Shown: piece after piece, positions 8,374-64,000 of the stretch | Numbering within the stretch: the first letter of the stretch is position 1 | Layout: every line of letters begins with the position of its first letter | From: Podarcis erhardii | Lineage: Eukaryota | NCBI GenBank assembly: GCA_964252035.1 | Contig: OZ176200.1 | Strand: one strand, 5' to 3' | DNA: 64,000 nucleotides | The notes under the pieces: model-generated | Database searches by the model: none | What the model was told of the DNA's origin: nothing | Seen by the model: the letters and a program-made list of their open reading frames with translations, nothing else | Made by a program: the position numbers and the translations under genes

Positions 8374-10699
8374 TAACTCACAAAGAGTTAACTTGTTAGA
8401 AGGAAAGCTGGCACTCTCCTGTTGCAGGCCTATTACAAATGTTTAGCACAAAGTCTACTGCATTTTGATGATGAGAGAGAATTTGAGGTGTTGATAAAGA
8501 GGATGGGAGATTTCAGTTGTCTTATTTTTATAGGTTTGTAGCTGAGATTAACTAATATGAAAGGGCAAAGCTTTCCCCCCTGTTAAGACCTTTGGTTAGT
8601 ACAATGCATTTCAGGAAGAACACATAATTTCCACCTCTATATTTTATTCATAAGGTGAATATGTAGGAAGTACTTGCAAGGAAGTATTGGCAGGTAGGAG
8701 GTGCTGAACCTCCTTGCCCGCAGCTTCTGCAGATGCCTCACATGGCTATTTTTAATTATTCCCCACCAAGTCAGGGTTGAAAATCAGAAGAGGGGAAAGA
8801 TCCAGTGGGCATAGGATGACTCAGTGAGTGTGAGGGGTTAAACAGCCTTTCCCTCATGCTAATTCTCTATAAATTCCACTTCCACCATCAGACACGCATT
8901 CCTCAACCCTCCACCATTACTTCCCAAATTCACATTTACTGAGGTTGCATGTCATTCCACCATTTTTTTTCTTTTTGTAACCCCCCCCCCCAAAGTTTCC
9001 TATCAAATGTGTACATGAATTATTATTATTTTAATGATGAAGGGTGAATATCTGAAAACTATTACGTTGAATTAATAATAGATGATTGTGTAGCAGTGGG
9101 CACAATAATAACAGAAACAATTCTGTTGCTGTAATGTTGGAACCACACAAGGAAAAAATGCAATACTCAGGTACAAGTTTTGTTGCGTTTTTACCTCTAA
9201 AGTGGTACTGTTACTCTCTGTGAGTGAAAAGTATGTATTGTTGAACATTAAACGGCATAGTAAAGGTACTGAAGGTGCAATTCTATTTTTTTAAGTTTTC
9301 AGTTGTCATAAAATAATTGTTAGTGTTCTAAAACACACCCAAACAGAACATATTTATGTAGAAATCTATTGAATGATATTTCATTTTGCATAATGTAGCT
9401 AAAAACTATTTCTGTGAAGAATCCATCCACTCGGGTGTAAACTTTGATGACCTGTTATAAACAAGTCAGTTGTGTTACCATTAAGCTATAATTTATTCTC
9501 ACTATGAAGATTTTGGATTATAATCCAGGAAGGAACGAAGAAATCTCACATTAAATATGTGTCTGAACTGCAAATGAGAAACAGACTGGCAAATCTACAT
9601 GCATTTTCCTCTTCCTCTCTTTAGTATTAAACTAGCATCTACTAGTTTAGCATCTGCTACAATTTGTTTCTGTCAAGTAACTCTTTCACTACCTATTTTT
9701 GTCCCAAAATACACAAAAAATCTAGGAAAAGTACAATTTCATATATTTTTTAATCAGTTATTCTGGCAGGAAAGCGTATTTGAACTAAAATGCACCTTAT
9801 ATGCAGCTATAATTTTACCTTGTTCACTGTCACCTCCTGCCTTTCTTCCCTATGTGTAAGTGCCTTGGAAATTTCCTTCAGTGTCCAAATAATGGGAGAG
9901 ATGTGTTGGTTTCAAAACATTGGGAATACTTCACCTGTCCACTCCATTTTCCTTGTTGCTATTGCTGCTGCTGTTATGAGAATGAGAGGGAACTAGTTTT
10001 TTTCTGTAAAAGGGCAGGCATGTGCACCAGCAACATTTTAAAAATCAAACAGTCAATGCTTGGTTTTCTCTGGAAAGTGGGAAAGGGAGAGATGATGAAG
10101 GGAAAATTACAGTGGGGATGGACTTAAAGGATATTACATTTTGAGACCGCACAAGAGTCTAGGTGCTGAGCAACAATGCATAAGCTCTTCTCTTAACACA
10201 AGCCGGAAGCTTTGAAATGCTAGAACCATTACTTGCTTTGGTAGTATTGCATATTAACCGAATGTGGAAAATTCCTGGGTAATAATTAAAGCACTTTAAA
10301 ATGAATGCTTGATTTTGGTCTAGGCAGCTTCCCTGAGAGCAAGGATGTCCAAAGTAAGATGAGACTTGAATTGCAAACTAAATAGAGCGGCGGCGGCGGC
10401 AGCGCTTGCTTTGTTAGTTAGTTTGACTTTCTGCTAGGAAAGTGATCCTGCAAATTCTTACTGAAGAAGTCCTTTGTAGTCAATGTCAACTGTACTACAG
10501 TTCTGCCAGGAAGGCATGGAAGTAGAAGAAAAACAACAACCCTGAGTTTTCATTATCCATGAACATTTTAACTAGTAAGCCTCTAATGGTACACAGAGCG
10601 AAGAAAACCTAACGATTGCTGAAAACCTGACGTATTGGCGAATAAACTAACTATATTAAACACTCGTTGACGGTCCCGACTTCAATGCCCTCTACTACA

Positions 10700-11800
10700 C
10701 ATCCGGCGCCTGCCAATGACTTACTTATGTAGCTAAAACTGGGCGCGGATGGTGGACTCTTCTCGCGACAGCTTCTTCCCGGCCTCTCCTTCTGCAGTGG
10801 CTACTCCGATTCAAAATCTACAATTTCCTACCTCTAGATCAGAAGATTCTTAGCCCACCTACCGTGTGACGCAAAAGCCTATTTTTTTCTCTTATTGGCT
10901 ATCAGAAACAGATCTAAGAAGCACGACGAGAAATGCCAAGAGAAATTCAATGGGGCGGGGGGATGTAGAGTTGTAGTCCTCGCTGACACTTCAGTTCTAG
11001 ACCCCTTTTACCACCGAGCTGCAAAGCTATAGAGCGGCGACCATAGAGAATCATAGCTTTCGAGTTGGTGGGCTTTTACCGGAAGTTCAGGCTGCAGGTC
11101 ACTGTCAATATTGCTCCCCCCCCCATAGGCTAGGCCTATCGCGCTCTAGAAGTGGCAGAAACAGGGACTAGCTGGAACCGGAAGTAGTTGGAGTGGGCGG
11201 GGAGGGAAAGGACGTGGAGGCAGCGGCTCGAGCCGTATCTTCCTCCACCGCAGGTCACGTGGAGGTGGCGCGGTAGCCTCTGCTTCCACCTGCCCCCCAC
11301 CCCCTCGGCGGAGCCCGGCGCGGCTGCAGCATGGCGGACACGGCCTCTCAGATGCTGCTGGGCTCCGGCCTCACGGTGCTCTCGCAGCCGCTCATGTACG
11401 TGAAGGTGCTCGTGCAGGTGAGGCCTTCAGTCCTGGCAGGTTTTCCTTGCTCGTGAGGGCGGCACTGAGTGGGTGGGAGGAGGTCAAAGAAGCCCCAGGT
11501 CGCCTCCCGCCCTCGCTCACTGGGGAAGAAGTTGCCTCCTCGCTCCCAAACGCGTTTCCATAGCAGCGCCTCCCCTCCCCGCGTAGCCAGCAGCCCCTCG
11601 GAGTAGCGGAGTCGCCCTTCGCCTTGGGTCGTATTCGGGCCTTGCTTTGCTTCAGACTTCCTTTTCGCAGGGCGGCGGCTGCTCGCCTCCCTACCCCGAG
11701 GCGTAGCAGCCGCGCCGCCGCCCCGGCGAAGGAAAAAGAAAGCCGCTCGTAGGGACGCGGGAAGCGCTTCCTCACTTTCGCACCATCCAGACAGCAGGCG
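10700..11800 (+). promoter_or_regulatory. CpG-island promoter of MTCH2
   Basis: CpG-rich; ETS/GABP CCGGAAGT at 11079-11086 and 11178-11185; ZNF143-like gagttgtagtc near 10970; TCTCGCGA core near 10762. Confidence 0.8.
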
Positions 11801-14800
11801 CCGTCATTTGCAGTGCAACTTCGCTTTTGAGTCTTTCTTTATTGCGCTGCCTAGTACCGCAGGTGCTGAGGTGGGTCCGGCGAGGGAAGCCCTTGGGAAT
11901 CAGCAGCTGCAGCCTGTTCTCTTCCAGAGTTGAATTACGAGCCCCACCTCGAGACTGGTCGAGGGGAAAGACTTCCCCAGGGTAGAATTTCAGTCCAGTT
12001 GCGGTGAACGGCTGGGCAAGGGTCCCTGGGTCCTTTGCAGAGAGCCTCCCTGTTGTAGAAAGAATGCTTCCTGCGGGGTTTGGCTGCTGTCAAGCACTCC
12101 GCCAGCTGCTTGTCACACTCGCATGCCATCCTGCCGCAGATACTCGTGGACTGGCATTCCGTCTCTGATCCGTTGCACGAGAGTTTGTAACGCTGCCACT
12201 TTACCCTGCGGTGACACTTTAAGGAGACCCTGGCGTGGCGGTAACAGCAGTCATGAATGAAACAGCACTGATCCACTGCATCCACAGGGCTTCCAGAACC
12301 ACCAGTTCCACAGTAGCAGCCATATAGATTGAGTCCTAGCAGTGGGATTTGCAACCGGTGCCGGTAACACCAGAGGGTCAAAATCAGATCCAAGACACTG
12401 CGTTTCTCTCGCTTGCTGCCTTTGCTGTGCCCGCATTCCTGAGAGAACAAAATTGCCAGTGCTAGCCACAGAACAATCCTCATTGCAGAAGCCAATGTTT
12501 AATTTTAGCCAGTTTCAGACTGGCATACCTCACTCAAATGTTTTTGTGAGCCTGGCTGATTTCTGAATCTGGATCAGTTTTCTGCTCTGGTTTTATGTGT
12601 GCCTCGTATTCAAATTTGTCCTCTTCTCATTTTTATTGGTAGCGTTTCGGACACTCCCAGTAGTTCCAGCCTCAAGAACTTCTTTATTTAGTATATTTGG
12701 CTGCATGTTGCTTTTGGCCAGCTGTGGCTTTGTACTTGTATCATCATTGGCTGAAAAGCATAGCTGCCCCAGGTACAACAGCCCTGTCTGTTAAAATATT
12801 TAACAGCCTGCATATCCACCTTCTAATAAAAAATGCAGGAACGGGAAGCACATTAGCATTTCTGAGTTTGGATGCACAAATTCCTATAATATAAGGTTCA
12901 GAATTTAAGGACAAAAGACAATTGTGAGGCTTCCTGTTATTAACCTCACAGTGGTTCTCATATGATTCACTACACAGAGGATATGTGGAGCTATGTAGTG
13001 GGATATCTATCTCAAAAATAAATACCGCCTACCTCTGCCAAGAAAGCACATTGTCTTCTTTGGTAAACTGGACTTGTGAAACACAGTATCCAATTTGTCC
13101 GTAAAACTTTTTGCTAAATTGCAGACCTTGATAATGTGAGTTATAAACTATGGAAAACATGTTGCCTAGTATGATATATTGTGACAAATCAAGTGGCTAT
13201 TCACAGCATAAAAAGCAAAATAGCTCCATGTTCTCAACTAGTTGTTTAACATTTAATCACAGCAAACTTATCTTCAGAGTCACCTAGATCACATCAAGGA
13301 CAAACATTTTAAAATAACTTTACCTGGTTGGAAAAAAATGCAAGGGGGAATCACTTTGGAGCAAAGAAGTGGGGGAATATAGTGTGGTGTCTGTGGAGAT
13401 ATATGTTTGGTCTGTAGCTCCAAATTTTATTTAAAGTATTTATTTCCTGTTCTTTAGCCAAAAAGATTCCCAGAACATCTTACGACAATCACTATATATG
13501 TATAGCACTAAGAGATGGCACCTGGTATGCAGTGACTCTGCCAGACTTTCTGCTGAGCTGCAGACCACCCAGACATTTAATGTGAGCTACGAACTATTAC
13601 CATCTTCTGAATATAGTGGTTTTAGAACTTTAAACTTACAGTTAGTAGCACAGCCATAGAATTCTAAGAACAAAAAAATCGATCATATTTTCTCTTATGG
13701 TTCAGTTTTCAAATGTCCAGTGAGTGGAACAGCCATAGTTGTTCACTGCTAGGGAATGTTGGGGTTATTCCTTCGGGTGCTGTTCACACTGTAGAGGTTG
13801 CTGCAGGCTGTCTCTTTATTTTGAAGGTGGGATATGAACCCCTCCCTCCAACTCTGGGAAGAAATATCTTTGGGCGACAGGTCTATCAGCTGCCTGGTCT
13901 CTTTGCTTATGGTGAGTGCATAATGTATAAGATTTGTGAATGAGCCAGAAAGACTTAAAGCAGGATTGGATTGCTGTAATTGCTGCACTGCACTTGGCGG
14001 TGCCTACGCCTTTGAAGCAGAGCTTCTCATGTGTACAAGAATTAGCTAGAGATCCTGCAACTGTTGGAATAGTGGTAGTTTATATAGGTAAAGTGGTGAG
14101 TCTCAACTCTCAAGAAGCTTCAGTGCTACAGCCATGATCATTGGCTTTTGAATTCATGCAGTGAGACAGAGTTAGAATAACAGGAAAGTACAATGTTTGG
14201 GCACCTGAGCCTCTCTCTTCCTGTAGCCTATTGCCCTTCAAGTATCCTTCATATGATTTAGCCTGTGCATGCATGTGCATGTCCCAGCAATGTCACACTT
14301 CATGCTCCGACTTGTATATTATTGGCTCTGAGCTTGCTTGCTTTCTTGCACACTGTTACTCAAACTTAGGATCATTAACAAGTAACTTGTTACTGCAACC
14401 CAGAGATGGGGGAGCTGTGACCCTCTAGATGTTGTTCAACTTCCTAACCATTTGGCAATATCTGGGAAACCTGTGACTTTCCCTCCTTGCTGTAGAGGAT
14501 GGCAGAGTTTGGGAAGGGCAAGCCGGGTTCTGGTGCATGCTGACATTATTTTAAGTGTAGTCCAATGTTCAGTTAAGCATGCTGAAATAAATAGGACATG
14601 AGCATGCTTTGCTGTGCAGGAGATTATGCCTGCAGCTGTGTATGGTGACCTTTGTACTGAAGTTTCTAACTTGGCATCAGGCCCCGTCTTCTCTAGCATG
14701 GGATAGGCCGAGTTTTAAATAGTTTTGCATCCCTAACTTCTTCTTTTTTAAACACATTTTTGGGTGCTGGAATCTCCTCTAGGCAGGTGTGTGAATGGGG

Positions 14801-34760: not shown

Positions 34761-37700
34761 GTTAATCCCGAGGGGGGGAAGGAAGTATGTGTGTGTGTGG
34801 GGGGTATTATTTATTTAATAAAATGTATACACTGCTTGGGGGACGCGGGTGGCGCTGTGGTCTAAACCGCAGAGCCTAGGGCTTGCCGATCAGAAGGTCG
34901 GCGGTTCCCCAAAGCATCAATTGATACAAGAGACCCTGGCTCAACCTTCAAAACAGGATCATATTTGCAGTGAGAACAGACTTGGTGCTTGTAAACTGAA
35001 TATGTGCATTAAAATAGGATAAAGCCACATCTGTGCTATCAGTAAACAGTTAACAGATTAATCTGCATAATTGGATAGTGAAGACACTTGACATGTGTTG
35101 CTTCTCCCAGTCGTAGTATGTGTGAGAGAAACCTTTATTCCTTTAAGAAGGGCCATAGGTGAGTAGCAGATCAGGTGCTTTGTATGCAGGTTCTGCACCA
35201 GGCATCTCCAATTAAACGGAACAGATAGGAAGGGAGAGGAAAGGGCCTCCTCTTCCCGAGACCCTGTTGAGCAGCTGCTGCTAGTCAGAGCACGCAACCC
35301 TAAACTAGGGGGCAAATAGTCTGATCTGCTATAAAGTAGCTTCCTGGGATAAAAGTCATCTAAGCCACCTTCAGCTAGTAGCAGATCTGTGTTTATAAGA
35401 TGCTGAAGCCCCTTCCTGCATTTACACTTCCTAATGCAGTAAACCCCCCCCTTTATTCTCTGCCTGAGAAATTGGGGGACAGAGACATTTATAAAAAGTT
35501 ATTTTTATTTGCTGTATAATTTCCTACAGCTTCATGAATAACAGTTTCTTCTGGCCCAGTAGCTTGTGAGACCTGCTGCTCAATCCACCCGCATAGCAGT
35601 ATGGTATGGTTAGTGGGCTGGTACAAGCTTGCGTTTAAGTCGTAGCCATGGGTGGCCAGGACTTGCATGTAGGTGAGTGAGTGGGCTAGCAGAGGAGGGA
35701 ATGGAGTGCTCTGTTCCTCTGCATCCAGCTTGGTACTACAACTCTCCAGTCTTTCTTTGCCAGCTCCCAGCTGGCTACTAAACATTTTTGTAGGCTAGGT
35801 AACTTTTCTGGGCTTATTTAAAACCCTGGGCTAGGACTTTCTATATCTATTTGCTGGTTGATTTGACCAGTTATTTAAATGGATGTTGAGAATCAAATTT
35901 GTATTTATTTAATGCTTCCCATATAAAATCCCAAAGTGATTTAGCAACATCCATGTGTGTGTGTGTGTACATGTCAAGGACAGATACAGACGGGGTGTGT
36001 GGTGGAACGCCACTTGAAAAGCTTATTGTAGAAAATGAAGGTTATTTGATAGGCACCTAAAAGATGAAATAGTTGGTGCCGGCTTGATGCCATGAAATGG
36101 AGCTTCATACCACCATGTTAAAGGTCCAGTTCCTACAGTGCATGGAATGGATCAGCTAATAAGCTGAAATTTCTACAAACTCTGTTCTGAACTTGATTAC
36201 ACTAACTCTTTCACTTGTATACAGTGAGGGCAATGTACTGTGCTATTAGCTTTATTCGTTATATTAGAAGTTGGTTTAATACCACATCAGTCCCTTGATC
36301 CAACCACTCTGCTTCCCCTTCTCTTCAGGTGACTTTCCACTACCGCACACTGCTTTGCAGTCCGGACCAGCGAGTCTTGGATGACAGCCGTACCCGAGGG
36401 AAGCCCATGGAGCTCATCATTGGCAAGAAATTCAAGCTGCCCGTTTGGGAGACTATCCTGCACACCATGAGAGAGGGAGAGATGGCTGAGTTCTTGTGTG
36501 ACACAAAGGTAATCCTTGTGGGATGATCAGCCTCATAGAATTGTTGAGTTGGAAGGGACCACGAGGGTCATCTAGTCCAATCCCCTGCAATGCAGGAAGT
36601 GGGGCTCAAACCCATGACCTTGAGATTAAGAGTCTCCTGCTCTACCAACTGAGCTATCATAGAACCAACATTCTTAAGTCTTAATTAATGCATGAAGGGG
36701 TTAATGCCACAGAATAAGCTGTCCTGCCAGGCTTAGTTAGGTCACTTCCCCTTAGGTCATCAATCCTATTGTACTAACCTCCACGCACATCTACCTGAGC
36801 TCAGCATGGCTCTCACAAACCACTCTTTTGAGTTCCTAGACCAATCATATAGAAACTTTAACCACTTTGTAACTTAGCCAACTTTCAGTGTCTGTGCAAC
36901 TTTATGAAGCCATTCGAAGTCAGTAAACCATTTTTAACTTACCCAATGTGTGGTCTTTTTCTGTGTTAGGGGAGGAGGAAAACTTTGGAAGGAGTTTGGA
37001 AGGGTGTATTATGAAGGTCTAACAACTTATATTTCCACACTTTATTTTGCTGTATATTTTGCTATTTTAAATCTGCTGGGGTTCTCTCACTAAACAGTAC
37101 TTACCTCAGACTTGGATCTTGGCATCCAGGTACTCTTCTTTCTATATACCTGTTTTTAAGTTGAACCCAGAACCCCCACTTCTGCAGCAAGCTAGCTTGG
37201 TCTAGTGTGGGAAGTGGCTTAGACATACCAGGCAAGGAGAGGTCTCTTCCCTAGCCCTGGCATCTGTAGTTTCCCTAACACATCCTTATGCTTTCTTGGT
37301 GCAGAATTGGAGTTTCCTTGGATGCAGCTTTCAGGATTCTCCTTCCACAACTCACAACTAAGTATTTGGATCTGGCACAGGTGATGGAATGCCAGATTTG
37401 TTCTTTTTGGAGAGAAAATACACCATTTCAGCACGGGCACAAAATTTTATCTCATATCTTTGGGGCTGATGGTTATTCCCTGGGAGAGGTTCTTCTCTCC
37501 TAGCAAGAAGGACTATGCCTGATCTTTTCTTTCTTTCTCTCCAGCATGTGGTCTTGTACCCAATGGTGTCAAAGAGCTTGAGGAACATTGCGGCTGGGAA
37601 GGATCCACTGGAGGGACAACGGCATTGCTGTGGCATTGCTCAGATGCATGAGCATCACTCCCTGGGTTACCCAGATCTCGATGAGCTACAGCAGAACCCC

Positions 37701-45776: not shown

Positions 45777-48700
45777 TCACCTCGTCCAGATACTCGCACG
45801 ACTGTCCAGGCTGGTGGCCGATTTGATGCTACAACATTTCTTCACAATCATGTTGATGTAGGCTTTCATGATTTTAATGATCTCTCCCACCTAATAAGAT
45901 AAGAGGGGACGGTCAGGATCACTTAACGCACTGAGCAGTTATATAGCAGCAATTTCTGATGGTGGCCAGAAGTCAATGGAATATAACTGGAATGGGGACT
46001 TGCGAAGGGTCTTCTGTATCCCCTTGCTTTCTCCCAACCCCTACTGCTACTATCACTTTGGGAAACGCAAGAAAGAAGCCTGCATTTCTTTGGCTGTGCA
46101 TACCTGTTCCCTGAGCAGAATTCAACCCCCGCTTGCACGTGAGGTTTAAATTCCGCTCAAGGAACAGGCACAGTCAGTCCAAAAAAATATGTCAATTGCA
46201 GGCTTCTTCCTAGCTCCCCCCACCCTCCTTTGCTCAGGGAACGGGAGGGAGAAATGCTTTGCCAGCTTTGTGACTGGTGATTCCAAAGCCCCACCCACCT
46301 GTCAAATCTGACCCATGTGGCCAATCTGGGGAGCTAAAAGGGTTCCCCACCCCTGCAACATACTTTAAAAAGGAAGCCTTTCGGCTTATGCTTTTTGCCC
46401 ACCCAATCCTGCCTCAGCACAAAAGTGCTTGTGGTCACTCACAAAACAGGCTAACTTAGTGTTCCATGAAGCATACCTGGGGGGTTTCAAAGTACATCTC
46501 TCTCTCATCCACTGTCAGCTTGAAGGTATTGGGCTGGGGAGCCCCAAAGAAGACAATGTGCTCATACTGGAACGTTTCTAGGGGTTTGGGGTCTCCCCGT
46601 TTGTACACCGACACATTCTCTGTGCTGACACTAAGCCAGAGGTCGTTGGGAAAGCCACCTTCCTTACACTGCAGGAAAGAAACAAGAAGAGTTAGCAAAG
46701 GGAAGGTGTTGCTTGGGGAAAAAGTCAGTGGACGGTTCAGTCAGTGGACGACTGAACCGAAGACTGAAAGCCCCTGGTCAAAAACCAATCCTCTCCCCCC
46801 CCCCAATCCAATGAAACCCAGAGTAATTAGTAAAGATTCCCACCTCAAAAGCAAATAATTTAAAAATGGTGTCAAAGACAGACCCAAAATATTTAATTTA
46901 TTTATTTCGATTTCCACTTCATTCTTTAATAGGATCTGCCAAATCTTAGCTCAACCATGAACAGGCTTAGTAGCCAATATTTATTTATTGTGTTTACATC
47001 CTGCCTTTCCAGATAGTTCAGGTCTGACTACTCTGTTCTCCTGCTTCCCTGTTTTATTCTCCAAACAATGCTGTGAGGTAATTTAGCTGTGACTGAGTTA
47101 GGATTTGAACCTGGGTGTACGCCCTCCTAGCCCAATACTCTTAGCTACACCCACATTGGCTCTTCAGCAATTCATCGATTAGCTTGCACCTCAATTCCCT
47201 CCCCCCACAATCCTCAATCTGTAATAGTGGGGGTAATAAAATAGAACCATCTTTGAAGGTTCTTATTAAGTGCAACTGAGACAATAAACATAATCCTCCT
47301 GTAGCATCTTTCAAAGAAGAAGGATTAATACTGAAGCTTCTTGTGTCTCTCACCTCCACATCAAAGACAGTGGAGCCATAGCCCGACCATTCCTTCATGA
47401 TGTTCATGTAGGCCACCATGGCTTGCTGCTGGAGCAGCCCCTGCAGTTTGCACCACTTTTCTGTTATGCTGGCCCGAGCCGCCGACAGCTCCTCTTTCAC
47501 CCACATCTCCATCATCTGCTCCTCTTCCACCTTTTGCTTCTTCACTGAGCCCGCCTTAAAGCTACGCTTCAGAGTGCCCTCCAGGAAGCTGGTCCGCCTT
47601 TTCTCCAGGGCATGGCTACTGGGACCGCTACTCTTCATGGACTGCAGGATTTTGGACTTCAGCCTCTTCACTGGATAGATGTTGTCCAGGGACCAGGAGA
47701 TTTTGGAAATATCCCCATAGAGGTACTGCAGCCTCAGAGCAGCCAAGTGCTGCAGTGTCTCCTCTGGGCCAGGGAAATGGCCGTCAATGAGACTTTCATG
47801 AGCCTGTGAATAGCAGAAGGAGCAATTTTATTTGTGGGTCTATAAATGTTGTTACTTGCTATTTTATTGTTCTTTGAAACTTTGGAATTTTAATACTGTA
47901 CATTGGTATGTTGTAACCAACCTTGGGAGGTAGATACACTAAAAAGCAGGCAAATAACTAGCTAACTAAAATACGTTTTTTTTCCAAAGGCTGTTTGCTT
48001 CAAGAGACCATCCCAATGCCTATGCTTACCCCTTTGGAATTATAATTAAGTTATGTATATTGCCTTATAAGTCAAGATGAACAACTCAGTGTCCTAATAG
48101 TAATGGGCTGTTGCAGGCAAATTCTCCACAACCCTGGCTTGACCCAGCCACCCACCTGCTTATTCTCTACCATGCGAAGACTTACCTGCTCAAACATGAA
48201 AGCAAATTCCACCCCTTCCTTGGGAACGTTTTCAACATCCAAGAAACAATACAGTTTAAAGTAGAGCTGCCAGTGCCCATCCTCATCCTCCTCTTCCACG
48301 GACCCAGCAAGTCTAAAAGATGAGGAAGAAGCTGGTTACCATCTGGTTCATTGGTTAAGAAGAGCTGGTCTACACGTAGCATCTGTCTCTGAAAACAGCA
48401 TCTCTGTAGCACGCTGCCATAAGGTCTCAGAGGACTACCAACATGGCAGAAGGCCTTCTTGTTTAGAAAGTATCAAATCCCCCAATGCTAAACAGGAGGG
48501 TTATTCCTGTGAAACACCTACCTCTCAAACTTGGCCAGAACATCAGCTACAATCACCCGACTCTCAATGGCCTTGTCCACATGCTTGTTGCGTTCAAAGA
48601 GGGCAAACATGTTCCGACTGTCTTCCATGGCCAACCCCCGGATCAGCTTCTCTACCACCTACAAAGGGAGAAGAGAGACCACATCACGCCACAAAATATT

Positions 48701-51700
48701 TGGTTGCACAAGGAACCTCTCAGACAAATGCAAACAGGCTGGACTAAGAGAGAGAGATATATATATTCCCTCCACTTCCACTAGTAGATGCCATCTGAAG
48801 CAAGCTGAATGCCCCTTCTTCCCTGGACAACTTTGCCTTGAAAATTCTGCCTTTGTTCTTACCTCTCCGGCAGTGGTATGAGAATTGATGGTAATTTGAC
48901 AGGAACCTCCTCCGTGGCAGTAGACAGTGGTGGTCATTTCCTCCCGGGTGATGAGGGCCTGTATTTCCTCCTGGGAGGGGACAAACTCCCTGCTCTTGGT
49001 TCTCTTCAGTGAATCAGTGATGAACTGAGAATACCGATCTATTTCAGTGCCTGGGAAGAGATCTTTTACTCTGGTTGAGGGAGGGTGAGGAAAGAGAAGA
49101 GGTAAATAACATATTGCCATTCTGTCATGAAACAAACTTTGACCTAGAACCGTGTCATTTGTATAGCAAGGCCAAGCCGACTCAAGAGGCTGTGGGCTAC
49201 CTGCGGCCTATGAAGATGTTGTATCACTTAATATAAGCAAATTTCATTCATTTGGACAGAGGTTATTTATTATTTTCTGCCTCTGAGACCAATATTTACA
49301 CCTTTGCCTAAAGATATCAGGACCAGCTTGGCACTGCTGCTTAGTAGAAAGCAGGTATGAGGGACAGTAGTACAGGAAGCACTGGAGTTTTCACAAAGCA
49401 AGATGGAGGTAAATTGGGGGTGGGTGGCCTCTGCAGTGATCTCTAAGGATGCAAGTATTAGGCAAAGGGCCTCCTGTTTGCATGCAGAAGGTTCCTGGTT
49501 CTATCTCCAGCTAGGACTGAATCCTGGAGAGCTGTTGCCCTTCAGCGGAGATAATACTGAGTTAGTCAGACTGATGGGCTGACTCAATATGAAGCAGCCT
49601 TCCCATGTTTCTATACGTCTGCAGCGACTGGTGCGTCTGGTGCTATGTAATGTATTCCTCAGTGCTCTGGAGTCAGTGAGCTAGCTACAATTGCAGAGAA
49701 ATTCCTCCAGGATGGTTCTTACCTTCTGAGGTGGAACTTGAGGTAACGGAGGATTCCTCTGCTGGGCAGGAAGGTGCAGCTCATGCAGGTCATCAGCTGC
49801 CAGTGGTGAAGGTTCCCTGGTCTGTTGGGCTGTGGCACGTGGTTTGTCTGCTTGATCAGCTGACAGTACACCTCGTCCCGGAGGGGCCTGAGATCATGGC
49901 AGGTCTGCAGAATGCCCTGGATAATGGGGATGGGGTCAGAGACTGTCTCGATCTCCTGAAGGGAGTTAAAGATCTTCATTGCTTCGTCCTGGAGGCTGCT
50001 GTAGCCTTTCTCTTGCTGCACTGCAGTGGGAGGAGGCGGCACAAACAACAAGGCAGGGAGAAGGCAGTCAGTATGTCCTCCAACTATGGACTGGCCAGCT
50101 GGTAGTTCATCACTCCAGGAAACACATTTGCTCATGCCCACAACCCAGAGGAGAAAGGAAACTCCTCTGATAATTATCATTACTCAAAGGTCACTTGAGA
50201 GACAATCCAGTTCCCCGCATTAGAAATGGTTACATGATAGGGCTATGATTCTGCTCCTTTCTTAATGCACAATTCTTTGTATATCAGCTAGTTAATTCCA
50301 TTTCATTGGTAAGTTCACTGCATCTTCCCACTTCTACAGTGTTTTTTTAAACATCAGAGTTCAGCAGGAGTCAACACAATAACTCTGATTTACAGTGCAA
50401 TTCTGTGCATGTTTATTAGGATGTAAGACCCACTGAGACTTACTTCTGAGTCAGTGTACACAGAATTCTTGTGCACACTCAGCTAAGAAGTAAGTTGCAC
50501 TGAAGTTGAACCTACTTTTGAGGAAACATGTATACTGGGTTGCACTGTAAAGCTGGATGACCTTCATCCTGGCAAGATTCTGCCTCAGTCCCATCCCATC
50601 CTCTAAAAAATATTCCTTTTGAACCCTTGACATAGCATCCTCGAAAGCCACCAAGTCACTCACAGTTGACCCCAACGTCCCCATATGGCAGTGGTAGAAG
50701 CGGCGAGTGCAAGGGATGCTGGGTGTATCTCAGGATAGGATTCCTCCGGTAGGTCTGTTCTACCACTTCAGGGTTCATGCTGTTCTCCTGAAAGGAAGGG
50801 GTGGGCAAATAGAGGTTACCTTTACAGGGCTTCTCTCTTTCCCTCCAACTATCTAATTGCACTATTAAATGGAAGTGCTCCCAGTCCATTACAGAAGAGA
50901 TAAAACAATAGTTAAAGGCCTTGTACTGCAAAAATGGCAAGGTGGTCAGCAACAGGGGAAACTGCCAAACCAAGTCCATAGAAGGATTTGGAGATCACTT
51001 TATATCACAAAATATCCAGAGTATGTCAGGCCAACAACAGCCCTCTCATCAAAAGGAATTTTGAATATTTAGAAACACGCCATGTTCTGACAGATCATAA
51101 TATTGCTTTTAGTTGTTGTTGAATAAAATGTGCATCTACACCCTTCTGCCGATTTTAATCGTGTGTGTGTGTGTGTAGGGAAACTAACCAAGTGTATATG
51201 TATTTCCATCTGTCTACCTGAAAAGGGGGGGCCAAACGGCAAACTTCAGAGAGAAAATTACAAGAGGTGCTTCCTTATAGCTCAGTGGAGGGATCCCTAT
51301 GATACAAACACGTGAAGCTGCCTTCTGTACAGTCAAACTGCTGGTTCAGCCAGTGTTCTTTATTCTGACCGGCAGCTGCCCTCCAAGGTCTGAGAGGTTT
51401 TCCTCAGCCCTGATACTGGATATCCTTCTTTCATGGGAGATGTTGGGTATTGTACCAGGGACCTTCTGTATGCAAACACTGTGATCTGCCACTGAGCTAT
51501 GACTCTCCCTTAAAAATGTGAAGCCTTTGGATTATCCTGCACGTATGAATGTGTCTTAACACACTATTCCCGCTGAAAGAGGGATTCTACAGTACCAGAG
51601 TCCTTTGTAGAATCCAGACCTAGTACTTAAGAATTAATAGACGCTGTCCTTTGTGTATGTTACATTCTTGCTTTTGATTATTCCAACGTGTGTGCAGAGA

Positions 51701-53606
51701 GAAATTGTATACCTAGAAGAGGGGTTGGAAGAAAGGGAAAGTGCCAAGGGACATCTCCGCTTCTGAACCGAACAGAATGATGCAAATAATGGGAGGGAAG
51801 CTCAAATACCTGGGTATTTACACACATGAGCAAATCCTAAAAGGTTGTATATGAAGAGAGCAAGGAAAGCTCATTTGCCTTAATATCTTAAACATGTGAG
51901 CATGAGGGGATCCTAGTAATCTGGATATAGAGCTTATAAAAAGGTAAAGGACCCCTTTACTCTGGGGTTGCAGCACTCATCTCGCTTTACTGGCCGAGGG
52001 AGCCGACATTTGTCCACAGACAGTTTTTCCGGGTCATGTGGCCAGCATGACTAAGCTGCTTCTGGCGAAACCAGAGAAGCGCACAGAAACGCTGTTTACC
52101 TTCCCGCCAGAACGGTACCTGTTTATCTACTTGCACTTTGACATGCTTTCGAACTGCTAGGTGGGCAGGAGCAGGGACTGGGCAACAGGAGCTCACCCTG
52201 TCATGGGGATTTGAACCACCGACCTTCCGATCGGCAAGCCCAAGAGGCTCAGTAGTTTAGACCACAGCGCCACCCACGTCCCTCATACTCATGTGCAATT
52301 AAGAGTTAGAGTCACTTACTTTAATGTCCCGAATCAGCTGCTGCGTGGGTGTTTCAATGGGAACCTTGCTGTCAATGACTCCTTGGATGGCAGAGACCCA
52401 GCGCATGGCTTCATTCAACAGCTTTGTGTAGAGCCGGTACGAGTGCTTTCTGCCATGCACAGTGATGTTCCAGTAGCCTGAAGGCACAAACAGAAACAGG
52501 CAACTACTGCCCAATCTTGGAGTAATTGAGATGGCAAATGACACAGCGAGAGAGAAAAGTGTGAGCTGGCAGAGGCCAGATCCTGGTGGCAATGTTGACT
52601 GCGCTCTATCAGCTGCTCATGACATGATGCAGTTGCCGTGCGATCTAAACTGGCCAATGGCACCCAAAGGGGTCTACAGAAAGCCCCTGATATTCCTTTG
52701 TGCACTTGATTGGCTTGGCCCATGGAGCACCAACTTAACCCCACAGGACTCACTCTGTGCCATCATTCCCATGACACAAATGCTATTTCACTCCAAAGAA
52801 ACCAGCAAATTAAATGTTATGGTTTATAGGATGAACAGAGTCAGTCTAGAAATTCTCTTCGGGCCTTACAGACTATGAATGCAGAACAGACAAAGGCATA
52901 TGAACATGTGATCTGCATCATACAAAGTCCAGCCATGGTCCCATCTATCCCAATACTAGCAGCTGGTCTCTCAGGCAGATTCTCCCAAGTGCTGATGCTG
53001 GATCCTTTGAAATGAGGATTGAAGCTGGGACCCTCTACATGCAAAATGCAGACCCTCCCCATAGTCTGCCAGGACTGTGTCCTATTACAAATGACCAAAA
53101 TGATATTCCACACATTTATAGCTCTGCACAAAATGGTAAAGAATGGAAACGAACACTCAGAGAAGGACACAGTGGCACACAAAGAACACCTTCCCCCCTT
53201 CCTTACCTGTTTCTTTGAAGACCCTTTCATCAGGCTGGACCACTGAGCAGAGGCTGTTCAGCACCAGTGTCCCGAGCTTGGTGGCTGTGCGCTCGGACGA
53301 TTTGTAGTAATCAAGGGCAGTGTTGGTCAGCACAAACCAGCGTTTCTTCACCTTCAGGGAAGAGGTCTTGCTACTGCTCTGGACCTCCTTATGAAGCCAG
53401 CCTGATGGGAAAGAGGGACAACGGGGCCCAATGGAATTGAAATTCAAGAAATCGAGTTTGCTCTCTTGCTAACGGGATGCTACTGGAGACCTTCAAATTT
53501 CTGTTCCTTTCTTTTAAAGAACAGAGGAAGGAGGAGGCACAAATCAGTCTAAACCTTCATCTCCCCCAGCTGATTTCCTGCCTTCACTATCAGAGCATGC
53601 GTTGCA

Positions 53607-53673
<67 letters not shown>

Positions 53674-56600
53674 TGTTTAGGTAACACTTCAACCACCCAA
53701 TGAGCTTTTAATGAACCATGTTTGGCTTTTGTGCTTGGAGGGAAGTGAGGGGGCGGGAGGAGACTGCTTGGGGCAAGTGGGAGAGGGCAGCTGAAGCGTG
53801 TGCTGAATGAGGGTTGGGAATTTTGACAATTGAGAGAGCGATGATGGGATCAGCATTTAATTATTGGGATGAATCACAGTCACCTCAAACCTCAGTCTGT
53901 TTACATTGTTCCTCAGATTAAATACTCTGCTGCTAACCCTGGGTATCTTGTCAGTGAAACCCACACTTAAAGGGTGTGAATACATACCTCAGTTCTTAAC
54001 ACTTATACACTGCTGTCAGAACATTAAGCTATGGTGGCTTTATCTTAGTAAATCCTTACAAGCATCCTGCAATGCCAATATGAACAGGTGGGGTTGAGGC
54101 AAAGAAAGCAGCAAACTTGCCCATGGCCACCTAGAGAATTCCTGGATGAGGGGAGATTTGAACTGGAGGCTTTCTCACCACCGCATGTTATGAGCCACTT
54201 CATTGCATCAGTTCTCATGGTCATCATCAGCTTCCTATCCCATTTATAAGGTGGGAAATGCCATTATCACTTTGGAAGAGTGAGCTGTGCCATGACTGTA
54301 GCAACTACTGCTATGGTGAGATAGGCTGCCTCAAAGGCCAGCAAATGGCTTATTTGTATTATTAACACCACTGGGGCAAGGAGGGTACTGTTTAGGTGTT
54401 CTGCCTCAGGCACAATATATTTAGCCAGCTCTTTCATCTTGCCTTCATACCTCTCACAAGAAACTCCTGCCCATCGACTCGAGATTCGCCTTTGGGCTTC
54501 TGCAGGAGGGAGATCCAGTGGTGCATCTCTTCAGGGATGTCACTGTTGCAGTGAATGACTCTATTTGCTGTGATGATCACAAAGGAGTTTGGCCTGAAAA
54601 ATCACCATCATCAAAATTAGTATCTCGTCGTCAACATCATCATCATCATCAATATTAATATTTTTCCAAAGCCACAACACAAATCTGTTTGTTTTTTGCC
54701 CAGACTCAAGCTGAGCAAGAAGAAAACATGTCAAGGTTAGGCCACACACAGAAACACATTGATTTTGCTCTCCTTTTCAAGGATGCAAGTCGGATTACTG
54801 CTTCAGATGCAACTTTTAAACTGTGGAAGCGCTTAGTGTTTGCCACGTCCAGAAAAACTACTATTCTGGAAGAAATGGGCATGTGTCGTGGGGAAGAGGG
54901 GGAAGTGTATGAAATGTCGGATTTGGCCGCAGTAACAGATGTCTTAGTTACATCCAGTTTGGATTACTCTAATACACTCTACATGGGGCTGCCTTTGAAC
55001 AGTACTCCGAAACTTCAACTGGCTCCAAAAGCTGCAGCCAGATTGTTGACAGGGGCTGGTTATAGGGAGCAGACGACTTCCTTGCTAGAACAGCTCCACT
55101 AGCTACAGGTCTGTTTCCGGGCACAATTCAAAGTGCAGGTTATTACCTATATAGTACCACATGGCTTACGCCCAGGCTGTATGAAGGACCTTATTGACCC
55201 ATACAAACCTGCCTGGGTCTTGAGGTGAGGCCCTTCTCCTAGTCCCGCCACCCTCACAGGCATGCTTGGTGGGGACATGGGAGAGGGCCTTCTTGGTGGC
55301 TGCTCCCAGTCTCTGGAACTTCATCCCTAGAGAAGCTAGACTGGCTCCTTGTTGCCTTTGCACTGGCAGATAAAGGCTTTCTTGTCCCAACAGGCTTTTG
55401 GGAACTGACTGCTTTTAATTAAATTAAAGGGCTGGTGCCATGCTGTTTTGATTGTAATTATTGGTATGCCTTAAACAGATTTTATATACGTATATAGTTT
55501 TCATTATTGATTTAAAAAAAAATGTTTTTAGTGGTTCTTGTTTCTATTTGTAAGCTGCCTTGAGTCCCAGCAAGGAGAAAAGTGGGGTATAAATAAATAA
55601 AAATAATAATTAACAACAAAAATGATGGTAATATATAAGGGAAAGCACCCCACAGGATGGTACTGTGCCATAAAAGCAGCCATCTCTCTGCAGAGCACAC
55701 ACAACTTTAGCTCATAGGGCAGGTGGTGTGTAGTTGCACACATTTTCCTGAAGTATGAAACACCCAGAGCTCGAGAACCCGAACCCACAGCAACTAGACT
55801 TTATTAAGAGGAAAGCAAATGCTTCAAGGAGCTTCTGGAGCCAATGGCCAGTCACTAAAAATAAACAGCCATTTGGGAGATATTTATACTGGCTGGAGGC
55901 ATTTTAAGTAGCTCCTTATCTGTTGCATTTATATTTACTCAAATATGCAATAGATGGATTTAAATATTTTCCCTTGTTACACAATTGTTGCTGCACCAAA
56001 AATATTTGAAAATCACAAAACGAAAAAGCACACACAAAGAGGAACTCAGCTGTAGCTTACCTGTCAGGATTGTCAGAAGCACAGACAGAGTCTATGAGTC
56101 CCACGTCCAGGGTTCCCTTTAAAACAACAACAAAAAATGGAACAAACTTCTAGATATATGCAAGATCCAGTTCCTACCATTCTGTTCCATTCCAGTGTGA
56201 TCCACACATAGGCATCCACTTTTTATTGCTTTTAAATTCATCTTGCTTCCCCCCCCCCTGCTGTTTTAAACTAATTTTTAGCTGTTTTTATTATCTTTTG
56301 TACATCACATTGGGATGTTTGTGGAAGACAGCAGCAGCAACAATACACGATGTGGCTCTGTAATTAGAAGTAGGCCACATTCGTAATTGTTGGTGTCACC
56401 AGGAGGCAGTGAAAATGTTGAGTGCACCCCTTTACTTTCTCTTAGAGGGCAACTTTCCTCAACCTGTGGCCCTTCAGATGCTTTGGACTATAACTCCCGT
56501 TAGCCTGAAACAGCATGGTCAATGATGAGAGATGATGGGACTGTAATCCCAACATCTGGAGCTCCTGTAGGAATGAATGACTGTGAGGATCAAAAACCTC

Positions 56601-59600
56601 TGACCTCTATGGATGACCAGGTTCCAATGTGTGCCAGGGGTGAGACATGGCACCCCCCCCTAAGTCCTTATACCGGTGTGTGAATGAGCTCTCTTTGTAT
56701 GTATGTGTGCATACGTTTATCTTATCTAGACATACACATACACACTGTAAAATCGAAGAAGCATCAGGGAAGATACCTTCAAGGGGAAATGGGGCTCCCG
56801 TATCCAGTGGCGTAGCGTGGGTTGTCAGCACCCGGGGCAAGGCAAGTAATTTGCGCCCCCTAACCCGTGGATTTGCGCCCCCTAACCCTAACCCCCAGAT
56901 GTTGCGGCCGGTGCGGCCGGCCCCCCCTGCACCCCCCACGCTACACCACTGCCACAAAGTAGTGCGAGGCTTAATCACATGGCGGGGAAGAAGGCAGCAA
57001 CTGGGTCCCGGGGGCGTCTCTGATGTGACTTTACGGGCACCATTTGCAAGCGGGGAGCGGCACCCCATCCGCGCGAGCGCGCCCCCAGACGCAGGAGCCG
57101 CGCAGGCAGGGCTGGGGGCTGAGGCGCCAATGGAGGGGAGATGAAGGGCCTGCGAAGCCCTCGAGCACCAGAGAGCTGCTCCTGGTTTCGCGGGGGGGGG
57201 GGGGCTCGGCCGGGGGCGGCAGCCCTTTTGTCCGCAGGATGGCAGCGGCGCCACCGGCCAGCCCCATTACCGGCCCGGCCAGCCTCCCGGGGCGCCAGGG
57301 CTCCGCCGCAACTAACACCTTCCCTCCAAAACTGGGCTGGTCGGATGTAGTTCTCTCCTGCGCTCAGCTCTGCGCTGGGCGGCCGCTGCATTTTCCCTCC
57401 CCCAGATAGTCCCTCCCTCGCTCTCTCTCCGCTCCGCAATGCACGCCTGGCACCCTCCCCCTCCACAGTGGGCGGCGACCCGGCAGCTCGGATCAGATTC
57501 GCACAGCCAGCACTGTGAGAGAGAGAGTGAGCCAGGACCAGGTAGGGGCAGAGAGCTCCGAGTGCGCCCCCAAAAATGTTGCGCCCGGTGCGGCTGGCAC
57601 CCCTTGCACCCCCCACGCTACGCCACTGCCCGTATCCCTTCCCCCTAAACAATTCTTTGAGGATGACAGTCCTGGAGGGTTGGTCACCTCTCCAAATGAC
57701 ACTTGGTGTACACTTGGTGTACACACTACTCCCCACAAAGATCTTCCTGGCACTGATCATAATCCCTTTGCCCAAATCCTGCTTCAGATACGTTCTTTGC
57801 CCAACATACCTGCCATCAAACTAGCTGAGGGCGTTAAATCCTTCAGGCAGCCTCCCTTTTATTTCAAACTCAGTTCTGTAAAAGGGTGCCCATGAAGAAC
57901 TCTCCTGCCGTTTACTGATGAACATAAGAAGAGCCCAGCTGCTGGATCAGGCCAACGGCCCATCTAGTCCTGCATCTCGTTCTCAGTGGACAACCAAATG
58001 CCTAGGAACATCCTTCATCAGCCAGAAGAGTGACAGTTTCAGGGGTCCACTTAACCCACCACTCACCACAGCATTCTTTGGGTTGGCTTGTTCATCCTGC
58101 ATCTCTCTCAGCTGTTGCTCTGTAGCACTGTGCACACGGCTCAGGACATTAAACCAGTCACTGTAAGAAAGACAGAAGCAGAAGACACTTAAAAAAAACC
58201 CCCGTATATATTTATTACTGAAATGGTTAATTTTTAATAGTCTAGAATACTATAATTAATATGCAGTTGTATACAAAGCATCATAGAAGTAATTAAATAT
58301 ATTTACTAATACCGATAACATCATACAAAGACTGAAACAATGATTTGATAACATGCATATCATGATTCATCTTCCACTCTCCTGCCTTTCCCTATTTTTA
58401 TAACTGCTTTTCTATTTAGAGCACATCATGGGAGGGGTGTTGCTTCCAGCTCTCCCACCCCTCGCCTTGGGAAAAAGCAGAAACCTTTTAAGAAAAACAC
58501 ACACCTGTCCTTGCATCCCCTACCTGGCATCCTCTGGTGATTCTGCCACTATGTGGTAAACTCGATCACATGTCACAATATCAAGGGCATTCTCTTTCTC
58601 GTGAATATCCACAATCTCCCTGAAAAACAACAAGTGTGAAGAGCCAGGATGAAAAGGCAGTTTGTCTATGTTTGGCATCCATCTCCATTGGCCTGCCTGG
58701 TCTCAAGGAGGCTCAACGCTTGAAAATACTTGAGAACAAGGAAGCAACAGCACCCAAAGATGAAGTAAGGTGACAGGCTGGTGTGGGAATGAGGGTACTG
58801 CCTACTGCACCTAGAGACCACCTTTGGGGGCTTTGTTGATAAGGAACCACTGCAAGGGCAACATCACTGAAAAGACTTTTAATGTGGGCAAAGAGACAGC
58901 TAAACCAATTCAAGTTGAAGGGTACTGACAAGAGAGGCCAGGGGGAGTGCACAAGAACGTGGGGCAAAATTTGCTACAAGAAAATTCTCAAATCAGTCCT
59001 AAGTAGGCCCATGCAGGTGGGGGGGGGGCAGTCAGTTGCACTTTTCACAGGCCTCAGAGGGCTAAACAGGCTGGGGGATACCACCAGGGGCCTGCCAGAC
59101 TTAAACTATCATGCCAAGAACAAGATTTCCATCCCAGGCCTCAAACAAGCTCTGCATGGGCTTGGTCCTAGGGTGTCATTATACATGCAGTACTGACACT
59201 GAAGCTTTAAAAATAGCCCTTGCACTCAGGTAAGGGGCTATAAGGCCCCACCCTCTCTAACAGCCTCAGGCCTAAAGATGTCCCACAGGACTTAAGGAGT
59301 CAAACAATTTCCCCTCAGGCCCAGGTTGTTAAGGATTCCCCAAACATCTCCTGTTACCAAGAATGGCAGGAGTGGGATACTGATTTATCCCTAGGGCTTA
59401 CAGACATAATAGTGTCCCATACTTGGCCTTCCTGATGTCAATCGTCCCTTTCAGCTTCTCTTCACTGTCGTTCTCAAAGTACATCAGCTTGGCCTCTCTC
59501 AGCACAAACCAGCGCCGTTTCCAATTCCGGCGAGACAGTGTGGACATGCCTCCTCCCTTCTTGTAAAGCCAGCCTGACTTCAAGGCCTCTTGCTTGGCTC

Positions 59601-60974
59601 GAAACCACATGAAGGCCTCGTTCTTCAGGACACACCAGCGCCGTCTCCAGGGGTTCATCAGGCCCCCTTGCAAGGAAGAGAAAAGAGACACAGTCAAAGT
59701 TATTGCACCACCAGAATGTCCCCACTCTGCACTCCACAAGCACCTGACAAAGACAGGGGCAGGTGTATCTTCCTGCCCTTGGCCATAACAGTTCCCTGAA
59801 AAATGTGGGGCTTCCTGTAGACACAGAATGCTAACATGCAAAAGCATGCAGAAGTTTAACACAGTGACATTAGCGGCAACGTACAGCGAGGCAGGGGTTG
59901 ACTTTTTGTATTACTACCTCCCCCTACAACCCTAAAAAAACACACCCTGGTCTGCCAGTTACCAAAGTAAAACTGGGAGTGGGGAGGTAAATGTGTGTAC
60001 TTGCACAAGCCCACACAAAACTGGCATGAGATATTTTGTTACCTGAAGTGAGGCCCAAATGGTGCCTCCTCCCTCCCCACTAAGACCAGTATCTTTTTTA
60101 TAAATGCAAATTTTGTAGCATCAAGCGTTAATTTCATTTATCCACCCCCTTACTACTACCCCAAATACTGCTTCACAGTGCTGCCAGATCACTTCAAGCA
60201 TGTTCCACAACAGGGCCTCTGCCATCTCTAAAAACTGTTATCATCTGTACATGCCCATTAAGGCACATCACAGCCTTTATGTGGATGCCAATGCAAAGCA
60301 ACCAAGGTCCCTTCTAATCCCTCCTTGACAAGAAGCCTTACTGACTTTATCTTGGAAATGAATAAGAACAAAGCAGCAAAACAGGGAGCAAATACTGAGA
60401 GGGGATTAGGGAGCAGGGGAAAATGGCTCAGCTTAGGGGACTGACCAAGCTGCTTACCTTTCATGTAGAGATAGCTGTGAAAATAGGCTGGCCCCGATCC
60501 ATTGAGCACAGTGACCCGGCTGCTGCAGAATTCTTCATCCGTGTCCATATAAGCATCCCCTTCATCCTCACTGTCTAGAAACTGGAGGCAAAAAGAATGG
60601 TTACGCTCCAGAAACAAAGCAGCACAACCTGCCAAGTCCTATCGCACTTCCACTACAGATCTAAGTGCTGAGCTGGCCAGGCAGTATGATAACCATACAG
60701 AAGCAGGAATGATCTAAAGTGGGTGAGTGATAGAGGCCAAAACCTGCCATACTCAGTTGCCAACATGTGGACTTTGGCCTCTATTTCCATTTTGGAACTA
60801 TCTGCTTTAAGAACCTCCAATTTTCTATTGCAATAGTTCTCTGATGTTCAGCCAAATGCATTCTGGCCATCTCAGCTTCTCTCTCTCTCTCTCTCATTAT
60901 CCCCCTTCTGGGGGGAGGCAGTCTAACCCCCTTCTGAGCAGATCATGTGAAAAGCTACAACTTTACACACAACC

Positions 60975-61016
<42 letters not shown>

Positions 61017-63080: not shown

Positions 63081-64000
63081 CTGGAAGAAAGGGTCACCCA
63101 AAGGGGCGCAGATGACAACTTTCAAAGATCAGCCTTAATGGAGTCACAGTAACAGATCTGAGAAAGCAGGAGCTTGCATGGCGCCCAAGTGGCACGCCCC
63201 TCTGCTCCCTGCATGTGCAACATTTCTTCTAATTGTTCTAAGGCATGAGAACCTAAGAAGAGCCCTGCATCAGGGCTGCATCAGGCCAATGGCCCATCTA
63301 ATCTAGCATCTTGTTCTCTCAAAAGTGACCAACCAAATGCCCATGTCAAGCCTCCAAGCAGGACCTGAGTGCAACAGCACTCTCTCACTCCTTGTGATCC
63401 TAGCAACTGGTATTCAGAGTAATACAGCCTCTAACAGTGGCTGGAGATGGGTCTTACTTAAAATTTTATGTCCTCGTAAAGTTTAAGGTGGTTTGAGAGA
63501 GGGTTACTGTTTTGTGATGGGAATGTTCACACCACTTTTGCCACTGGTCTTTGGCTGTTTTGTATTGTTTTTTAAAAAAAACCTGGCCTGTTTAACGAGG
63601 TACTCATGGGACAAAAGAACTAAACATCTGTACTGTACACCATGGGAAGCAAAGGCTCTCACAAGCACTTCCAACTCTCTTAAAAGGCTATGGTCTATCA
63701 CCAAGCCAGGTGACAATAGGCTGGATTCAAATGTGCCTTGGATGGAAGTGTCTTTGATCCACCAGAAGATCTCATTAATGAACAGGGGTCAGTAGGGATT
63801 TATTTATTTTTTTTGCAGATTCCACCTCTCAGCTGCAACTCCCTCACCATTTTAAAAAAATGTGCCCCTTGAGCCTCTATCTGGCTCAAGAGAGAAATTT
63901 CCACTGGCACCAATGCAAGCTTTCATTCAGAGCCGAATAGCAGCTGCCCCCCCCCCCCAGTATTTTTCAACAGGACTGTGGCACAAAAGAAAGAGGTAAC

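Follow-up and report, generated by a model that had tools for sequence, protein, structure and literature searches.

The MTCH2 locus and its nested gene

The window analysed here is a stretch of 64,000 nucleotides (nt), without any N, from contig OZ176200.1 of the Podarcis erhardii assembly GCA_964252035.1. It carries the first exons of MTCH2 on the plus strand. The coding part of exon 1 (29 residues) occupies 11331..11417 and is followed by a GT donor at 11418, read GTGAGG, and exon 2 (also 29 residues) occupies 13827..13913 and is preceded by a canonical acceptor, TTTTGAAG. The intron between them (11418..13826, plus strand, 2409 nt) houses a second gene. On the minus strand, 11935..12483 forms a complete single-exon coding sequence (CDS) for a secreted pro-phospholipase A2 (PLA2), recognized by its open reading frame (ORF), a match to Pfam PF00068, the fold modelled by AlphaFold and the ratio of nonsynonymous to synonymous substitution rates (dN/dS). 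Since the ORF sits between exons 1 and 2 on the opposite strand, it lies within MTCH2 intron 1 in antisense orientation, as the first-pass annotation of this DNA had proposed, 517 nt from exon 1.

The stop-free frame spans 11935..12495 and is the sole such minus-strand ORF listed. Within it, a conserved ATG at 12483 opens 182 uninterrupted codons, and the stop codon follows at 11937-11935 (minus strand; 11935-11937 in window coordinates). The earlier claim of an intact, intron-free ORF for a secreted PLA2 at 11935-12483 thus stands. A CpG-rich stretch at approximately 11000-11800 (GC 0.60-0.68) covers the start of MTCH2, reaches 400 nt into intron 1, and stops about 130 nt short of the PLA2 stop codon. 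The 3′ end of the nested gene therefore abuts the promoter region of its host.

The encoded protein

The ORF product is a recognizable secreted phospholipase A2 (sPLA2) by every comparison made. PF00068 (phospholipase A2) covers residues 47-139 with an E-value of 2.3e-27 and 96 bits, against a curated cut-off of 32, and 153 distinct sPLA2 sequences of the PDB match at E<1e-5. The AlphaFold model, computed from an alignment of 59 sequences (mean predicted local distance difference test score, pLDDT, 83.9), displays the sPLA2 fold, with a helix at the N-terminus, a pair of long antiparallel helices and a beta-wing. Foldseek aligns this model with many PDB sPLA2 structures at a probability of 1.00 and template modelling (TM) scores of 0.8-0.9. 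The highest-ranked structure is a pig enzyme re-engineered to have the disulfides of group X; the human group X enzyme itself reaches 0.88-0.90. A search of the ESM Atlas returned generic PLA2 clusters only.

Three parts can be distinguished along the chain. The pre-pro region (residues 1-28; 12400..12483, minus strand) consists of a hydrophobic signal peptide, in which a helix is predicted at residues 2-17, and a propeptide ending in R-E-K-R. This tetrapeptide (residues 25-28; 12400-12411, minus strand) is a convertase-type RxxR motif placed directly ahead of the mature N-terminus. An RxxR precedes Cys11 in 38 of 39 members of the family described below, with R25 and R28 near-invariant. The mature catalytic core (residues 29-156; 12016..12399, minus strand) contains the Ca2+ loop, the catalytic residues and 16 cysteines. 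The loop, YGCYCGxGG at residues 54-62, follows the pattern Y-G-C-x-C-G-x-G-G and is invariant across the family alignment. The catalytic dyad His77-Asp78 (equivalent to H48/D49) is encoded at 12250-12255 (minus strand), and Tyr81 (Y52), Tyr99 (Y73) and Asp124 (D99) complete the catalytic network. Reading and aligning the residues thus bears out the signal peptide, propeptide and full catalytic domain, with Ca2+ loop, His48-Asp49, Tyr52, Tyr73 and Asp99, that had been noted at first inspection. The loop, the catalytic residues and all 16 cysteines of the mature part are invariant in 17-18 family members, from sharks to squamates.

Past the last cysteine, a C-terminal extension (residues 157-182; 11938..12015, minus strand) carries an N-W-T sequon at 11992-12000. 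A CPAxxxNxTEI block after the last cysteine is kept from sharks to squamates, and 24 of 39 family members have an N-x-S/T sequon in this region. The extension is modelled with a pLDDT of about 60, and it is under weaker constraint than the core.

These parts suggest how the protein may work. The signal peptide would direct secretion of a zymogen, and a furin-type convertase would cut after R-E-K-R and so activate it. sPLA2-X is activated by furin-type convertases (PMC7603386). The freed mature enzyme is predicted to be a basic protein of ~154 residues (computed isoelectric point about 9) with eight disulfides, presumably paired as in group X to judge by the cysteine positions. It would hydrolyse the sn-2 ester of glycerophospholipids in a Ca2+-dependent manner via the His48-Asp49 dyad, and its C-terminal tail is probably N-glycosylated at the N-x-T sequon.

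Integrity and selection

The CDS was compared with those of ten other loci, giving a set of 11, and dN/dS was estimated by the Nei-Gojobori method with a codon bootstrap. The CDS is uninterrupted in 11/11 loci. Against the window, dN/dS is 0.22 for Rhineura, 0.16 for Tiliqua, 0.13 for Anolis sagrei, 0.15 for Pantherophis and 0.14 for the turtle Mauremys. Other squamate pairs give 0.07-0.17, so that the overall squamate range is 0.07-0.22, in line with the purifying selection that had been anticipated. The bootstrap upper bounds do not exceed 0.40, and dS reaches saturation. Constraint is concentrated in the mature core, which taken alone gives 0.09-0.19, and is looser in the C-terminal tail. 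Low dN/dS together with invariant catalytic and cysteine residues marks a working enzyme gene rather than a young pseudogene.

A nested gene shared from skate to squamates

Protein searches recovered orthologues well beyond lizards. Identity to the window protein is 72-85% in other squamates (Tiliqua, Pogona, Rhineura, Anolis sagrei and Pantherophis), 62-67% in turtles, 53-67% in amphibians (many frogs, two caecilians and a newt) and 45-50% in the coelacanth, sharks, a skate, paddlefish and sturgeon. NCBI lists these proteins under inconsistent names, including 'crotoxin basic subunit CBd-like', 'PLA-B-like', 'minor isoenzyme-like', 'F17-like' and, in one frog, 'otoconin-90-like', since its pipeline assigns such names where no named orthologue exists. 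Among the frogs, two Lithobates proteins (P0038 and P0180) represent a divergent second branch of the family beside an ordinary ranid orthologue (P0026). This branch is represented by 8-11 Logan contigs whose lengths are much alike (1.4-1.7 kb), a possible sign that they are assembled transcripts.

At every locus fetched, the gene length equals 3 x (number of residues + 1), which implies a single coding exon. The position of the gene is equally stable. MTCH2 exons 1 and 2 were placed in other loci by tblastn with the window peptides, and in eight further species they flank the PLA2 gene, which is on the opposite strand. Intron 1 measures 2.4 kb in the skink Tiliqua, 2.35 kb in the amphisbaenian Rhineura, 2.3 kb in both the snake Pantherophis and the turtle Mauremys, and 4.2 kb in the anole Anolis sagrei. 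It extends to 10.9 kb in the frog Discoglossus, 16.2 kb in the caecilian Rhinatrema and 14.6 kb in the skate Leucoraja erinacea. AGBL2, the neighbour of MTCH2, comes next in the squamate loci. The same PLA2/MTCH2 order is found on the Logan contig L008, where MTCH2 exon 1 lies 1.56 kb beyond the PLA2 stop. The protein of this contig is 73% identical to that of Mauremys and, in the trees, branches basally to the turtles. L008 might come from a crocodilian or from a divergent turtle, and would then bear on whether archosaurs keep the gene.

Two other fish loci were compared. The paddlefish has two single-exon copies in tandem, placed not inside intron 1 but 1.1 kb upstream of MTCH2 exon 1 and in divergent orientation. 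They occupy 8575-9123 and 10001-10510 of the fetched locus (L012) and are 49% identical to each other, and the sturgeon orthologue is 86% identical to the first of them. In the bamboo shark, 4 kb separate the PLA2 gene from MTCH2 exon 2. The nested position common to skate and tetrapods is most simply read as an arrangement already present in their common ancestor. Most likely, then, the gene has kept its antisense place within MTCH2, or at its 5′ end, from a time that predates the divergence of cartilaginous and bony fishes. Mammals, birds and teleosts appear to have lost it.

Relationship to other secreted phospholipases

The place of the family among sPLA2 groups was assessed from an alignment of 63 domains, in which cysteine columns were compared, and from a tree on ~137 columns (IQ-TREE, LG+C20+F+G4), in which a protein named group 10 sPLA2 by NCBI served as the anchor of group X. 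All 16 cysteine columns of the window protein are common to group X (11/11) and to the family (18/18). They include both the Cys11-Cys77 pair of group I type and the pair of group II type between Cys50 and the C-terminal cysteine. Group II lacks Cys11 and Cys77, and in IB-like domains Cys50 is found in 0/7 and the C-terminal cysteine in 1/7. As a structural description, judged by its residues, 'group X-like' is therefore correct, and the earlier reading of 16 group X-type cysteines with a basic propeptide (16/16 columns; REKR at 25-28) is upheld.

The phylogeny gives a different picture. The family forms one clade (support 98/96) that is recovered in 100% of bootstrap trees and stands apart from group X (94/96), group II, the IB-like proteins and the otoconin-90 domains. 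HMMER scores show a similar break, with at least 127 bits within the family and at most 106 outside it. Two high-scoring proteins, P0035 of Rhinatrema bivittatum (455 residues with four PLA2 stretches) and P0040 of Hypanus sabinus (223 residues with two), have domains outside the family clade, and may be tandem arrays fused by gene prediction. The group X affinity first assigned to the gene therefore holds for its cysteine pattern and propeptide but not for its position in the tree. The gene is accordingly classed not as PLA2G10 but as a lineage of its own, with group X as a possible sister.

How closely that lineage is tied to group X is the main point on which readings diverge. The family could be the direct counterpart of PLA2G10, that is, either a very old retrocopy of the group X ancestor or a sister gene to it, and this reading deserves serious weight even if it is rather doubtful. 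The two share identical cysteine columns, an N-terminal propeptide whose basic residues suit furin-type convertases, and an intact Ca2+ loop and catalytic network. The best structural match of the model is the pig enzyme re-engineered towards group X, and human group X aligns with the model at TM scores of 0.88-0.90. An approximately unbiased (AU) test does not reject a grouping of the family with group X (p 0.095). The constrained tree is nevertheless 16.4 log-likelihood units worse than the best one, which instead pairs group X with group II, itself a weak grouping (81/50). Since domain 2 of otoconin-90 has the same cysteine columns, the shared pattern may be ancestral, and the tree drew on no more than ~137 columns. 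The families also differ in ways that the cysteines do not reveal. Identity between them is 31-37%. In the window and in eight other species the gene has a single coding exon and sits inside MTCH2 intron 1, as opposed to a multi-exon gene at the PLA2G10 locus. A conserved C-terminal extension of 10-40 residues bearing an N-x-T sequon also sets the family apart, and the protein searches recovered no member from mammals.

PLA2G1B offers a second partial likeness. It is likewise a propeptide-bearing zymogen with Cys11-Cys77, it provides the top PDB sequence and fold matches of the ORF product, and 'minor isoenzyme-like' is the NCBI name of many family members. Group IB lacks Cys50 and the C-terminal cysteine, however, and belongs to a different clade.

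Otoconin-90 proteins are the next-best HMMER matches after the family. Together with the frog protein that NCBI calls 'otoconin-90-like', this raises the alternative of a mainly non-enzymatic structural or ligand protein, for example an otoconial or biomineral matrix component like otoconin-22 or otoconin-90. The taxa that keep the nested gene may also roughly overlap those with aragonitic otoconia. This alternative is improbable. Domain 2 of otoconin-90 has all 16 cysteine columns but has lost Asp49, Tyr52 and Tyr73, and across otoconin-90 domains the Ca2+-loop glycines are gone as well, whereas the MTCH2 family keeps all of these residues invariant. Otoconin-90 is moreover a two-domain protein of 450-1100 residues in a well separated clade. 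Koludarov et al. report an 'otoconin-22-like' Pla2 gene that is most closely related to Pla2g2 and is separated from the Pla2g2 cluster by ~40 genes (bioRxiv 10.1101/583344). Like the gene studied here, it is a single-copy non-mammalian sPLA2 beyond the classical mammalian set and is under negative selection. It is not in MTCH2, and an identity of the two was rejected on these locus grounds (Pla2g2-linked region versus MTCH2; 10.1101/583344), the distinction being one of locus description and not of sequence.

Origin of the intronless gene

In conventional sPLA2 genes (groups I, II, V and X) the coding sequence is split into several exons. Retroposition would fit the MTCH2-nested gene, because all introns are gone at once and the gene lies antisense within a host intron. 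Given that skate and tetrapods share the nested gene, any such retroposition took place in a stem gnathostome and not in squamates. In its single-exon CDS, opposite strand and intronic position, the gene resembles other intron-nested retroposed genes. It differs from them in its great age, in having no identified parent gene, and in flanks that hold no visible poly(A) remnant or target-site duplication. Such hallmarks are not expected to persist after so long. A single ancient retroposition in the stem gnathostome is about as probable as its alternatives, namely stepwise intron loss or an ancestrally intronless state.

Combining these lines, it can tentatively be proposed, with somewhat less confidence than an even balance would warrant, that the gene represents a twelfth, so far unnamed, conventional vertebrate sPLA2 lineage. 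This lineage would be marked by group X-type disulfides, a furin-type propeptide and a glycosylated tail. It would have been retroposed into MTCH2 intron 1 in a stem gnathostome, remained nested in antisense ~0.5-7 kb from the host promoter ever since, and been lost independently in mammals, birds and teleosts.

A much younger origin had been favoured at first, namely retroposition of a PLA2G10 mRNA into MTCH2 intron 1 within squamates or lacertids, which would have given rise to a squamate-specific new sPLA2. The intronless CDS, the antisense nesting, the 16-cysteine pattern identical to group X and the furin-type propeptide would all agree with such an event, but it is now highly improbable: turtle, frog, caecilian and skate have this nested single-exon gene too, and the family clade takes in sharks, coelacanth and paddlefish and is not nested inside the group X clade. 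What survives of the 'functional retrogene' is its first half. The gene looks functional by dN/dS and CDS integrity, its recent retroposition in squamates is contradicted, and an ancient one is plausible.

Expression, candidate signals and functional status

Taken together, the window interval 11935-12483 (minus strand) is very probably a functional single-exon gene for a secreted Ca2+-dependent PLA2 zymogen, belonging to an old gnathostome lineage distinct from PLA2G10. Several observations weigh against this interpretation or against parts of it. Enzymatic activity and propeptide cleavage are deduced from conserved residues. No orthologue was found in birds, mammals, crocodilians or teleosts in protein-database searches, including the strong matches of an exhaustive search. 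The absence is suggestive, as these searches covered protein databases and not genomes at the DNA level. At the bamboo shark locus (L003), the 10 kb that follow the PLA2 gene yielded no MTCH2 exon 1, which leaves nesting unproven there; the skate locus was used in its place.

Transcript evidence also belongs on this side. Reads of two raw RNA-seq runs from related or the same species were examined over window positions 11430-13820 (2391 nt), along with two contig runs. Each RNA run gave 6 reads over these 2.4 kb, almost none of them in the ORF, and thus no support for expression; about 12% of each run was covered, and the tissue is unrecorded. The reads defined no transcription start or poly(A) site, and the contig runs gave short contigs of low depth. 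Over 14 loci, no positionally conserved poly(A) hexamer or TATA signal was seen. All RNA reads on MTCH2 intron 1 share one mate direction, as expected of MTCH2 pre-mRNA. Reads this sparse are no evidence of silence, and expression is neither shown nor excluded.

Among the public runs that hold the locus, none is on record as RNA. Logan contig L008, considered as a possible transcript, was rejected because it carries MTCH2 exon 1 and is hence genomic. L006 and L007, checked for the same reason, have divergent GC-rich tails at their ends. Two sequence elements are candidates for signals of the gene's own. A polyadenylation-type hexamer, AATAAA, lies 92 nt past the stop codon at 11838..11843 (minus strand), where it had been reported from the outset; no read of the two RNA runs shows a 3′ end there. 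Upstream, alignment of 250 nt from six squamate loci revealed a squamate-conserved block, CCAATAAAAAT, 146-160 nt before the ATG (12629..12643, minus strand), which is a candidate CCAAT/TATA-like promoter element.

The possibility of a decaying or non-functional ORF, or of a mis-annotation kept by chance in a conserved intron, could appeal to the missing RNA support and the inconsistent database names, but it is scarcely credible for a CDS that is intact at all 11 loci, with a dN/dS this low at dS values up to saturation, and whose catalytic residues and 16 cysteines are invariant across the sampled gnathostomes.

Novelty and significance

The gene is an ordinary, functional-looking member of a well-known enzyme family that already carries ad hoc names in public annotations. 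It had been put forward as a possibly undescribed squamate sPLA2, a description that fails on both counts, as the gene is machine-annotated in many public genomes and is not specific to squamates. The opposite possibility, of an already annotated and ancestrally intronless gene across vertebrates, essentially applies from skate to squamates, but none was seen in mammals, birds or teleosts, and a literature search found neither a paper describing an MTCH2-nested PLA2 family nor a consistent name for it. The lineage itself, however, appears to be undescribed so far, as do its conserved MTCH2 nesting and its apparent loss from mammals, birds and teleosts.

The mammalian catalogue comprises 11 sPLA2s (PMC7603386). 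This set is usually taken as the vertebrate set, yet jawed vertebrates other than mammals have at least one further enzyme with an intact catalytic site, apparently lost in mammals. The gene consequently belongs in comparisons of the sPLA2 repertoire (lipid-mediator, digestive, skin, reproductive and venom-gland enzymes) of reptiles, amphibians and cartilaginous fishes, and is relevant to the trees that root the evolution of venom PLA2s. The PLA2/MTCH2 pair is also an unusually long-lived nested antisense pair, and can be used to ask whether such arrangements reflect shared regulation or inertia. The finding has no bearing on human MTCH2 biology, nor is the protein a new kind of molecule.

Other features of the window

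Downstream of MTCH2, the window apparently holds a gene for a MYO10-like unconventional myosin (47141-63125, minus strand). Its minus-strand ORF pieces comprise a FERM_M domain at 47141-47746, a PH domain at 59398-59862 and a myosin-X coiled coil (MYO10_CC) at 62160-63125. An Rfam tRNA match at 36598-36657 (minus strand; 38.5 bits, model positions 7-64) has no ARAGORN call and is probably a fragment of a tRNA-derived short interspersed nuclear element, not a tRNA gene.

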